From Tubulanus polymorphus (lineage: Eukaryota > Animalia > Nemertea), in assembly GCF_964204645.1 (NCBI RefSeq), contig NC_134031.1:15673807-15737806 (forward strand): a DNA stretch of 64,000 bases, read 5' to 3'. Each line of letters begins with the position of its first letter. The first letter of the stretch is position 1. Position numbers and translations under genes: made by a program. Shown here in pieces: positions 6,700 to 35,587 of the stretch. Under the pieces are notes generated by a model that saw only the letters and a program-made list of their open reading frames with translations, did no database searches and was not told the origin of the DNA.

Positions 6700-7247
6700 A
6701 TGGCTAGCACGACGACCACCAAAGAAACCAACAAGCATGGAAACGTTACTACGACGAAAACCATATACAAGGTGGACACTGACCATACCGGACCTATCAT
6801 TACGGCCAGGCCTACTTTGGCTATCCAAAGGTCGCCCCTTATGGGTGTAGGAGGCTCTGGAGGATCAATGAGTATGCATAGCCACCACAGCATCCATGCT
6901 CATGGCCGTGCCCCGCCAACCGGTGCCTACATAAAAATGACCGGTATGGGCTCTGGTCAAGTGAAGGATCAGCGCGTGAGGGAGAAAAAGGAAATGCAAG
7001 ATTTGAACACACGTCTGGCTGATTACATCGAAAAGGTTAGATTCCTCGAAGCTCAGAATCGTAAATTGGCCGCAGAGCTGGAGGCGCTGAGGGCAAAATG
7101 GGGCAAGGAAACTTCGGCTATCAAGGCGATGTACGAGGTTGAGTTGGCGCAAGCGCGCAATCTGCTGAATCAGTCGGAAAAAGATCGTCACACTTTGGAA
7201 ATCCAAATCAATACAATCCAAGATGAGCTCCGAAGTAAAATGCTCAG
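6700..7247 (+). CDS. IF alternative first exon 1a (head + coil 1a + start of coil 1b)
   Basis: ATG at 6700; [12 protein letters not shown]...[30 protein letters not shown]; donor AG|GTAAGC at 7247/7248, phase 2. Confidence 0.92.
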
Positions 7248-34200: not shown

Positions 34201-35587
34201 GGTGGCATGAAAGGTGAAATGTCCGCTAAGACTACCTACCAACGAAGCGCAAAAGGCAACATCTCAATCAATGAATGCTCATCCGACGGACGTTACATCA
34301 TTCTAGAGAACACCGGAAAGAAGGTATGTAGGTCAAATGATTTATCAAATAATCATCGTCTGTTTGTTTTTTATTTACTGAAGAAAAAAGAATTTCCTTC
34401 ATTTTTTTAAATATTCACAATTATTGACTTATCTCAATAACTATTCACTACAATTTAAACCGATCGGATATAGGGTATAAAAGTAACTGGAGCTTTCTTT
34501 ATCTATTTTAAAAAAAGCGTGGAAATTCGAAATATTTGCTGTATAAAATTGTTGGCGGAATGAATTTGGTTCGTAAGGACTCTGTACTCTAGTGTAGCGT
34601 ATCAAAATTCACGAAGATTAGTCTTTTCGAATTTTAGTTTTAAACTAATTAGGAGATTGAATATTAATAAATCTCGGAATAGGACTTGAAGTTCACAAAA
34701 TCAAGATGAAATCATCAATAAAAAGTCTTGTACGTTGAGTACAGATTACCTTGTTGGCCATAGCGCTCGTTGGAAGTACTCTGGTTTAGTAAACAGGGCT
34801 GCCATCCTCTAAAAAGTGCTTTCAGTAACAAATTTAATTCTGCATTGAAATATGAAAGAAAATGTCCAAGTTGATTAGTAATCAACAATGACCCTCTTTC
34901 ATATTTCTTGCATCATCAAACATAATCAAATTATTATTTCTTGTTTTAAAAATAGTAACAAATACTGAACATCAGGAGCAGTTGGCAGCTTTGAAAACAC
35001 GTATTGTAGCTGTGTTAAGCATGCACCTGAACGGATCCAGAAAACAAAATATCAATCCTAAATATTCTTTTCATATATCTTTCGTATTAGGATGAGATCA
35101 TCGACGGCTGGCACATCACCCGTTCAATCGACCATAACCGCAACAACGTTAAATTCACCTTCCCATCAAATTGCAAAATCGGAACTGGACCGACCAAGAA
35201 TAAGCTCAAGGTAAACAACACGAGATCGAAACGACAGTTTTATATATTTCCAAAACGAACAACGTACAATTCGATTCGTTAAATCGTTCTTGAGTTAATT
35301 GATAATTGATATATTTCGATGCAGATCTGGGCTAAAGGTACAGCCAAAAACGAATTCAGAGATGGAGACCTGGAAGCTAATCTTGGAAAAGACAAATGGG
35401 GAGTCGGTGCCGACATTGTCACTACACTTCTCAACGCTGAGGGAGAGGTATGTCCGCCTGTCCGGGATTTTCCTTCAAAATGAAATTGTCTCTGAATCTA
35501 AAAGAATCAAAAATACTAAATTGATGTTTTTTTTTTGTTTCACTTCAGGAGCGTGCCACCCATTCACAGAAAACCATCTACACTTAA
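6700..35587 (+). CDS. Cytoplasmic intermediate filament protein gene, protostome long-coil-1b type with lamin-tail domain (whole span, multi-isoform)
   Basis: Coil 1a motif ([22 protein letters not shown]), rod-end motif ([18 protein letters not shown]) and LTD exons ending [12 protein letters not shown]. There is no CaaX box. All exons join in frame at GT/AG sites. Confidence 0.95.
7529..7639. mobile_element. Hairpin MITE, GGGCCCGGTT family (related copies 26900-27010, 40062-40176, 59620-59734)
   Basis: Terminal inverted repeats GGGCCCGGTTTTATAGACTGGTATTACC ... GGTAATATCAGTCTATAAAACCGGGCCC. Confidence 0.8.
7690..8335 (-). mobile_element. 5'-truncated non-LTR retrotransposon 3' end with AATAAA + (AAACTG)n tail
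   Basis: ORF 7975-8265 encodes [33 protein letters not shown]; the tail lies at 7690-7718. Confidence 0.8.
8814..8878 (+). promoter_or_regulatory. Promoter elements of exon 1b (CCAAT box, GATAAA, TCAGTC initiator-like)
   Basis: GGCCAATCAG at 8814; GATAAA at 8840; TCAGTC at 8873. Confidence 0.55.
8961..9502 (+). CDS. IF alternative first exon 1b
   Basis: ATG at 8961; paralogous to exon 1a; donor GT|GTAAGT at 9502/9503, phase 2. Confidence 0.92.
10374..10589. mobile_element. Inverted dimer of a hairpin MITE (single related copy at 49853-49961)
   Basis: Two ~105-nt units bounded by GTTCCACAGT...ACTGTGGAAC that share a central CTGGGTCCAG. Confidence 0.75.
11071..11080 (+). promoter_or_regulatory. 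CCAAT box of exon 1c
   Basis: AGCCAATCAG, 178 nt before the ATG. Confidence 0.5.
11251..11813 (+). CDS. IF alternative first exon 1c
   Basis: ATG at 11251 (MSTQTKSD); paralogous to exons 1a and 1b; donor AT|GTAAGT at 11813/11814, phase 2. Confidence 0.92.
15951..16385 (+). repeat. Direct tandem duplication, ~222-nt unit x2
   Basis: attgatttgc...gccttcgatgtaccttccga.acacaatttgtattctatgt occurs at 15961 and 16183. Confidence 0.9.
17531..17814. repeat. (AT)n microsatellite
   Basis: Directly visible; ~284 nt. Confidence 0.98.
18748..18884. mobile_element. MITE (second copy at 47487-47607)
   Basis: CAGGGTCCAGTCTCACAAAAAAG ... CTTTTTTGTGAAACCGAGCCCTG; the internal block cctcattgaaaac..gaagtaaccaatgg is shared between the copies. 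Confidence 0.75.
19278..19506. repeat. (AT)n microsatellite
   Basis: Directly visible, with two AC interruptions. Confidence 0.98.
19983..20169 (+). CDS. IF shared exon 2 (coil 1b, 187 nt); missed by the ORF track
   Basis: Acceptor cttctccAG (phase 2); encodes [62 protein letters not shown]; donor CAG|GTTCGT. Confidence 0.93.
22271..22366 (+). CDS. IF shared exon 3 (96 nt)
   Basis: tttcAG|[32 protein letters not shown]|GTACGG. Confidence 0.95.
24718..24879 (+). CDS. IF shared exon 4 (162 nt)
   Basis: ctgcAG|[37 protein letters not shown]...YYDTK|GTAATC. Confidence 0.95.
25013..25138 (+). CDS. IF shared exon 5 (126 nt)
   Basis: tttcAG|[42 protein letters not shown]|GTAAAT. Confidence 0.95.
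25289..25509 (+). CDS. IF shared exon 6 (221 nt, end of rod)
   Basis: ttttcAG|NAHLEKMY...[20 protein letters not shown]; donor AG|GTAAGT, phase 2. Confidence 0.95.
27258..27327 (+). CDS. IF post-rod exon 7a: [19 protein letters not shown]; phase-1 donor at 27316, or read-through to GKK* (stop 27325-27327)
   Basis: Phase-2 acceptor ctttcAG. The (R)IGLKSVVE start is typical of protostome IF tails. Donor G|GTAAAA is in phase with the LTD exon. AATAAA overlaps the stop codon. Confidence 0.85.
28101..28467 (+). CDS. IF post-rod exon 7b (Gly/Ser/Met-rich); phase-1 donor at 28303, or read-through to stop at 28467
   Basis: Phase-2 acceptor ctacAG; encodes [21 protein letters not shown]...GGGGS; donor A|GTACGC at 28303/28304. 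Confidence 0.78.
28743..28866 (+). CDS. Candidate IF post-rod exon 7c: [26 protein letters not shown]; phase-1 donor at 28822, or stop at 28866
   Basis: Weak acceptor ttctaaaAG; the phase-2 frame is open and Gly/Ser-rich; donor G|GTGAAG is phase 1. Confidence 0.5.
29091..29637 (+). CDS. IF post-rod terminal exon 7d (long Gly/Ser/Met tail, no LTD)
   Basis: Phase-2 acceptor gcaac[13 protein letters not shown] is paralogous to the [11 protein letters not shown] start of 7a. Stop at 29635-29637; candidate AATAAA at 30815. Confidence 0.85.
33414..33428 (+). CDS. Candidate 15-nt microexon (phase 1-1, adds xGNKR) upstream of the LTD
   Basis: Long T-rich tract + ttttgCAG|CCGGCAACAAGCGAG|GTTAGT; frame-preserving. 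Confidence 0.55.
34196..35587 (+). CDS. IF lamin-tail-domain exons: 34196-34323, 35091-35210, 35325-35447, 35549-35587
   Basis: Encodes [30 protein letters not shown] / [11 protein letters not shown] / IWAKG...[17 protein letters not shown] / [12 protein letters not shown]. The first acceptor is phase 1. Confidence 0.93.

Follow-up and report, generated by a model that had tools for sequence, protein, structure and literature searches.

The 64-kb stretch of DNA analysed here (hereafter the window, whose own positions serve as coordinates throughout) comes from the palaeonemertean Tubulanus polymorphus and carries on its plus strand, from 6.7 to 35.6 kb, a single intermediate-filament (IF) gene. 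The layout of this gene is best explained by three duplicated units, each made of a promoter and a first exon, and a set of duplicated, frame-locked post-rod exons, all arranged around one rod; a probability of about 0.85 is assigned to this reading. The design is real and constitutes a new combination of known tricks, part of which can already be seen in RefSeq, where the public automated annotation contains two heads, two post-rod exons, and two optional cassettes. An initial annotation of the same DNA, made from its letters alone, had described three paralogous first exons, one set of rod exons, several alternative post-rod exons, and a single lamin tail domain (LTD), and every one of these parts was found in place.

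Three First Exons and One Acceptor

The three first exons, A, B, and C, form a tandem series with a spacing of 2.2 kb, followed by a single 8-kb intron. The coding sequence of first exon A spans 6700-7247 and ends at a phase-2 donor (CAG/GTAAGC, score 11.6), first exon B spans 8895-9502 with coding sequence from 8961, and first exon C spans 11140-11813 with coding sequence from 11251. All three terminate at the same point, with a canonical GTAAG donor in phase 2, leaving two bases of a split codon, and each encodes the head, coil 1A, linker L1, and the beginning of coil 1B. The three heads are mutually 58-64% identical (tblastn), and each matches positions 2-85 of the Pfam Filament model (PF00038) with E values of 1e-18 to 1e-19 (1.7e-19 for A). 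C and B share 52% identity over the head itself and 72% over the portion of exon 1 that belongs to the rod. The initial annotation had spoken of a constant rod; the constant part starts only at exon 2, as about 90 rod residues vary with the head, and the rod is therefore not wholly constant.

Contigs from sequencing runs, examined across the head region (6300-12200; 5,901 letters), show how these exons are joined to the rod. Run X3 (study P1) and run X5 (study P2, 2014) were taken as RNA because their cover is confined to exons and their contigs have spliced ends. In both runs, one contig ends at 9502, the end of exon B, and another at 11813, the end of exon C, and both run on into the same 29 letters. 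That 29-nt sequence is unique both in the window, where it forms the start of exon 2 (19983-20011), and in the genome as a whole. Therefore, B and C are both spliced to the same single exon 2, as seen in RNA-like contigs from two independent studies. That the contigs stop 29 letters into exon 2 would be the expected behaviour of a k-mer-graph assembler at the point where two paths merge, if k = 31 is assumed. Contig depth in run X3, which is a rough guide only, is alike for B and C, at roughly 1000-2200.

Each head is preceded by a composite motif consisting of GCCAATCA, a spacer of 50-80 nt, and GGCGATC, so that the GCCAATCA box (CCAAT) is located 50-80 nt upstream of the GGCGATC element. The motif occurs exactly three times in the window, at 6569-6652 before head A, 8815-8890 before head B, and 11072-11151 before head C, where no occurrence is expected by chance (none in 100 shuffles). 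The RNA-like contigs begin at 8895 for B, just behind its module, and at 11140 for C; both 5′ ends coincide with the GGCGATC element, which here follows a CCAAT box by 60-80 nt, and no overhang further upstream was listed for them. The presence of one motif copy before each head thus indicates that the duplicated unit comprises promoter, 5′ untranslated region (5′UTR), and first exon. Separate start sites for B and C are suggested by the contig ends together with the position of the motif, a contig end being no proof of a start in itself.

The duplications are old. Synonymous sites are saturated between the heads, with dS of approximately 1.3-1.5 for B and C, whereas dN ranges from 0.27 to 0.44; the B-C dN/dS is about 0.18-0.22, and for pairs involving A the saturation of dS precluded calculation of both dS and dN/dS. 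A tree built from exon-1 equivalents places the three Tubulanus heads within the nemerteans, with B and C as sister sequences (98/96) and an earlier branch leading to A. Head A may be orthologous to the head of a relative (P0278), next to which the tree places it, but the support is weak (85/72) and the identities do not favour A.

A Protostome-Type Rod and Lamin Tail Domain

RefSeq names the locus "60 kDa neurofilament protein-like" and gives it five isoforms, X1-X5 (XP_074653990 to XP_074653994), which were first retrieved through a search with the IF protein of Lineus sanguineus, the closest named relative. By exact peptide mapping, all five place exactly onto exons of the window. The common part begins with exon 2 (19983-20169), whose acceptor is common to all heads, which encodes coil 1B with lamin-type extra heptads, and which is exact in all five isoforms. 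It continues with exon 3 (22271-22366) and exon 4 (24718-24879), both supported by the Filament search and by the isoforms, exon 5 (25013-25138), placed by the isoforms, and exon 6 (25289-25509), which encodes the end of coil 2B (...LLEGEET), closes with a phase-2 donor, and is supported by the isoforms and by a match to Filament positions 239-313 (E 1.2e-12). Besides the match in every head exon, the Filament model is thus covered at 110-142, 142-203, and 239-313 by the rod exons, and the rod-end motif ...YRKLLEGEE is present, giving the rod expected of a protostome-type cytoplasmic IF. Exon 2, of 62 residues, spans the gap from 85 to 110 in the model (24 positions), which leaves approximately 38-42 extra residues and yields a coil 1B of lamin length; across 60 residues it is 57% identical to the Lineus IF protein. 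A lamin-length coil 1B has about 42 residues more than that of vertebrate cytoplasmic IFs.

The LTD (PF00932), carried by the RefSeq isoforms, is encoded by exons at 34196-34323 (found in the Pfam search and in the isoforms), 35091-35210, and 35325-35447, followed by a last coding exon at 35549-35587 that adds 12 residues before the stop codon (35585-35587); the latter three exons are placed by the isoforms. The C-terminus, ...SQKTIYT, has no cysteine motif and hence no CaaX box. An LTD without a CaaX box distinguishes the protostome-type cytoplasmic IF from lamins. The locus is the main cytoplasmic IF gene of T. polymorphus, of the protostome type, with a lamin-like rod and an LTD.

A search of the genome with the Filament model found four places, namely this locus, a second cytoplasmic IF gene, a more distant lamin-like gene on contig C5, and a weak fragment on contig C40. 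The exon pattern of the present gene recurs in the second cytoplasmic gene (L004; C7:11188300-11194900), with approximately 36-66% identity between the exons of the two (tblastn); the second gene begins with one long head rich in Gly/Ser and also includes a poly-Gly tail exon and an LTD. This locus is the richer of two cytoplasmic IF genes and not the whole family; the earlier suggestion that it stands in for a gene family went too far, given the second cytoplasmic gene 4.5 Mb away and the lamin-like gene.

It must be considered whether the locus is an artefact of assembly, in which three IF genes with near-identical rods were collapsed into one, or in which the heads belong to separate, truncated genes. 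The layout is not the one expected from the collapse of whole genes, as the heads stand in tandem 2.2 kb apart before one 8-kb intron. The DNA of the rod is unique in the assembly (268 Mb, 77 contigs), save for an intronic repeat, and so is the start of exon 2. Over the three heads, contigs of run X1, which is DNA-like (as is run X2), have an even depth of 25-30 once repeats are left aside. In addition, B and C transcripts carry identical exon-2 sequence, the NCBI annotation treats the locus as one gene, and a tblastn search with every exon against the window gave no additional copy of any head or rod exon. The unique rod, the tandem heads, and the flat DNA depth over the heads together make a three-gene collapse very unlikely, and an artefact of either kind is regarded as having hardly any chance of being correct.

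A Frame-Locked Choice of Post-Rod Exons

Downstream of the rod, the gene of three units and one rod continues with alternative exons that open with the motif R-[IS]-G-[LMF]-[KN]-x-[VI]-[VI]. Post-rod exon T1 (27258-27316; 59 nt) encodes 20 residues, short and acidic, and occurs in RefSeq isoforms X3-X5. Post-rod exon T2 (28101-28303; 203 nt) is Gly/Ser/Met-rich and occurs in X1 and X2. The initial annotation had placed the T2 donor near 28447, while the RefSeq donor lies at 28303; the donor scan predicts 28447 as a second T2 donor, in phase 1, with a read-through stop predicted at 28465-28467. Post-rod exon T3 (29091-29637) has 181 codons, its own stop codon (29635-29637), no usable phase-1 donor in the donor scan, and an ATTAAA signal at 29661, 24 nt past the stop, and is predicted to be a terminal exon encoding an LTD-less tail. 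T2 and T3 are paralogous (tblastn E 2e-11) and share the long, Gly/Ser/Met-rich body. The initial annotation had counted three or four post-rod exons; three have phase-2 acceptors (T1 at 27258, T2 at 28101, T3 at 29091). A possible fourth, at 28743-28849, is compatible in frame, but its splice sites are poor (acceptor -4.6, donor 2.0) and it is not in RefSeq, leaving it doubtful.

Two optional cassettes, which the initial annotation had missed, lie between these exons and the LTD. Cassette K (32353-32415; 63 nt, phase 1/1) is present in X1-X3 and missing from X4 and X5, and micro-exon G (33414-33428; 15 nt, phase 1/1, encoding GNKR) is present in X1-X4 and missing from X5. Cassette K supplies a basic, His-rich insert of 20 residues with two Ser-Pro sites, loosely recalling the phosphorylated Lys-Ser-Pro tails of neurofilaments.

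The reading frame constrains how these parts can be combined. T1 and T2 are both 2 modulo 3 in length, entering in phase 2 and exiting in phase 1, and K, G, and the first LTD exon all enter in phase 1. When the exon joins were translated computationally, joins with no T exon, or with T1 and T2 together, led to a stop within a few codons, whereas any single T exon, with or without K and G, kept the frame open. The mutual exclusivity of the T exons is therefore imposed by the reading frame, and each RefSeq isoform holds either T1 or T2. The earlier count of about 30 isoforms is valid as a bound on frame compatibility and as nothing further.

The five RefSeq isoforms sample this grammar. X1 joins head C, the rod, T2, K, G, and the LTD; X2 is the same with head B; X3 combines head C with the rod, T1, K, G, and the LTD; X4 lacks K from this series, and X5 lacks both K and G. 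The gene is thus not limited to one head and one post-rod exon, as B and C are joined to exon 2 in two studies and RefSeq holds both T1 and T2. Four of the junction peptides that the initial annotation had proposed (KNDV/IEEL, KAAI/IEEL, EETR/IGLK, and EETR/SGMN) appear in the RefSeq proteins, while KMLR/IEEL and EETR/IGFK were not found.

T1 has a further feature. If its donor is left unused, reading is predicted to continue through GKK into a stop that overlaps an AATAAA at 27323. Within 16 nt (27313-27328), the T1 donor, the three-codon read-through, the stop, and the AATAAA overlap. Judged by its sequence, this overlap could be a compact device that determines whether the mRNA is spliced on to the LTD or ends there.

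Head A and T3: Working Parts or Relics

In a reduced version of the gene, heads B and C, post-rod exons T1 and T2, and the two cassettes make up the real gene, and head A and T3 are unused relics of older duplications. Several observations weigh against the full reading. Neither head A nor T3 is represented in any of the five RefSeq isoforms, which do not use the T2 donor at 28447 either, and these isoforms, built by Gnomon from short reads, do not prove the linkage of heads to tails. Runs X3 and X5 are not recorded as RNA. No junction of A to exon 2 occurs among the loose ends listed, head A is uncovered in run X5, and its cover in run X3 is 100-200 times below that of B and C, similar to the low depth of an intron stretch at 12055-12200 in the same run. 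The T3 acceptor scores 4.6, compared with at least 8.7 for all 13 supported acceptors, T3 has no transcript or RefSeq support, and its low-complexity composition leaves the opposite strand open as well. Protein searches for Tubulanus transcript-derived proteins with head A or T3 were blank; these blanks are uninformative, because the highly expressed B and C gave none either in a search restricted to proteins of head-exon length.

Other properties weigh against relics. Head A keeps 182 open codons, a start codon, a strong donor (11.6, in the best-scoring class), and a full promoter module despite saturated synonymous sites, which is not expected of unconstrained sequence of that age; the probability that a random 183-codon frame stays open would be about 1.5e-4. 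Cover of head A in run X3 is restricted to the exon, with two contigs inside it (6799-7119) at a depth of about 9; the depth is 1.5 at 7088-7284, and neither 7285-7481 nor the 400 bases before the start codon has any. Since an intron piece reaches similarly low depth, this RNA signal is suggestive only. As for T3, it retains 181 codons, the conserved opening motif, a coding-like GC content at third codon positions, and the ATTAAA 24 nt after its stop, and its acceptor stands well above the background of intronic AGs (mean -1.8; 5% of 322 AGs reach 6.9). Moreover, an IVDD-type post-rod exon is expressed in another species (P0264).

On balance, the reduced version is considered unlikely, and the reading with three units and a cluster of post-rod exons is preferred. 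Within it, head A is probably used, to judge from its sequence, and would represent a third start that is weakly or narrowly expressed. For T3, use and disuse are given even odds.

Relatives

In several species, isoform sets are identical save for the exon right after ...LLEGEE(T/N)x and diverge at the same split codon. Isoforms X1 and X2 of Lineus longissimus form such a pair, differing in the post-rod exon. In Owenia fusiformis, four proteins (P0329, P0331, P0387, and P0388; CAH1785440-443) combine two versions of rod exon 5 with two post-rod exons, two by two, which suggests that this annelid has a mutually exclusive exon pair inside the IF rod. One further spiralian has three forms, built from two alternative adaptors plus a cassette that may be included ahead of the LTD. 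In further pairs, one form stops early and has no LTD, and LTD-less isoforms are found in other species (P0006, P0018, and P0056). These isoform sets show that the tail grammar is widespread in Spiralia. The frame-locked post-rod adaptor, shared by nemerteans, an annelid, and other spiralians, appears to be an ancient rule of how protostome IF genes are built, and one seemingly not described before.

Alternative exons for the head and coil 1A were found only in Tubulanus among the 158 full-length relatives compared; other apparent head differences in this set reflected either truncation at the N-terminus or divergence among closely related sequences. Mollusc genomes contain many annotated proteins that consist of a head alone (180-195 residues). 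At the Mytilus and Aplysia loci of such proteins, a single head lies within 10 kb on either side, a result that is uninformative because introns there are long.

Repeats Around the Heads

The intervals around the first exons hold several repeats. Between heads A and B, a repeated element occupies 7482-8466, with a DNA-contig depth of 177-6,300, and contains a minus-strand open reading frame (7975-8265) that is Cys/His-rich and probably a retroelement fragment. Between B and C, at 10423-10590, lies a short, very high-copy repeat that resembles a miniature inverted-repeat transposable element (MITE), with palindromic GAGTTAACTC and CTGTGGAAC...GTTCCACAG motifs. Its DNA-contig depth reaches about 84,000, compared with about 28 on either side, and RNA-like run X3 also contains it in abundance; it has no Rfam match, nor was there one anywhere across 6000-36500. 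The 8-kb first intron contains two (TA)n microsatellites of about 300 bp each (approximately 17540-17840 and 19260-19510), shortly before exon 2.

Proposed Mechanism and Meaning

The following model is proposed. A unit of promoter, 5′UTR, and first coding exon would have been duplicated twice in tandem, with the GGCGATC element at the start site and the CCAAT box forming the promoter of each unit. Promoter choice would select first exon A, B, or C, which would then be spliced to the common exon 2 acceptor, and the three promoters could allow cell-type- or stage-specific starts, A being rare or restricted. Exactly one T exon would be spliced in after the rod, K and G would be included or skipped before the LTD, and T3, or read-through of T1, would give LTD-less tails by internal polyadenylation. 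In this way, the spacer that separates the LTD from the rod would owe its length and chemistry to the post-rod exons. The variants may serve to adapt filament assembly and filament partners to cell types.

Gene families, such as those of vertebrates and nematodes, are the usual explanation for IF diversity. The Tubulanus genome is compact and has only two cytoplasmic IF loci, one of them with duplicated modules at both ends of a shared rod. Beyond the disordered head, the first-exon modules swap coil 1A and early coil 1B, the segments concerned with the start of the dimer and the register of the tetramer. Because coil 1A and early coil 1B differ between the forms, the variants may also differ in dimer or tetramer compatibility, in addition to any head-mediated regulation. 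Natural isoforms that differ only there offer a ready-made experiment on how this segment controls assembly and pairing.

A broader proposal is put forward tentatively, and it is thought more likely to fail than to hold. Spiralians might diversify their cytoplasmic IFs mainly through exon duplication within one gene, examples being the post-rod adaptors of many lineages, rod exon 5 in Owenia, and the units of promoter, head, and coil 1A in Tubulanus. The Tubulanus heads might then be under cell-type-specific promoters and coupled to particular tails, and co-expressed B and C might form distinct or obligatorily mixed filaments. If true, a single gene would correspond here to the keratin or type III/IV families of vertebrates.

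Comparison with Known Systems

The single mechanisms, alternative promoters and alternative tails, each have precedents, and full-text searches of the literature returned no description of tandem paralogous IF first exons or of a frame-locked post-rod cluster. Isoforms of Caenorhabditis elegans ifb-1 differ at the N-terminus. According to an article that cites work of Woo and colleagues from 2004, they are produced from their own promoters with partly different tissue expression (PMC6605810). As in ifb-1, one cytoplasmic IF gene of Tubulanus gives N-terminal variants, probably from alternative promoters. In contrast to ifb-1, which has two starts and no known paralogous post-rod cluster, it has three paralogous units of promoter and exon that include coil 1A and early coil 1B.

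In the non-neuronal IF gene of Helix aspersa (A/B) and the squid neurofilament gene (NF60/70/220), head and rod are shared and the tails differ by alternative 3′ processing, which is said to have been reported by Dodemont et al. in 1990, Szaro et al. in 1991, and Way et al. in 1992. Like these, the Tubulanus locus is a single protostome IF gene with a lamin-like rod and variation after the rod. The Helix and squid genes are not known to have alternative first exons. The Tubulanus post-rod choice differs from theirs in consisting of frame-locked paralogous exons and two in-frame cassettes that mostly rejoin the same LTD.

In vertebrate LMNA, germ-cell lamin C2 uses an alternative first exon, and lamins A and C differ in their 3′ ends. 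LMNA is thus an IF gene varied at both the first exon and the 3′ end, as in Tubulanus, and the earlier suggestion of novelty, with no described case of both arrays known, was too strong, although LMNA is without paralogous arrays. In lamin C2, a short and unrelated first exon takes away the head together with part of coil 1A, whereas the Tubulanus first exons are duplicated full head exons, and the LMNA tails do not form a paralogous exon array.

In Drosophila, a single muscle myosin gene, Mhc, combines alternatives from several exon clusters, a role that falls to a gene family in vertebrates (PMC2289080). Mhc and the Tubulanus gene are both single coiled-coil cytoskeletal genes with alternative exon sets. 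Mhc belongs to another protein family and varies internal exons under one promoter region, in contrast to the whole units of promoter and first exon varied in Tubulanus. With the IF genes of Lineus longissimus, Owenia fusiformis, and other spiralians, Tubulanus shares an alternative post-rod exon at the same split codon. Where Owenia has duplicated rod exon 5, Tubulanus has duplicated the exon for the head and coil 1A.

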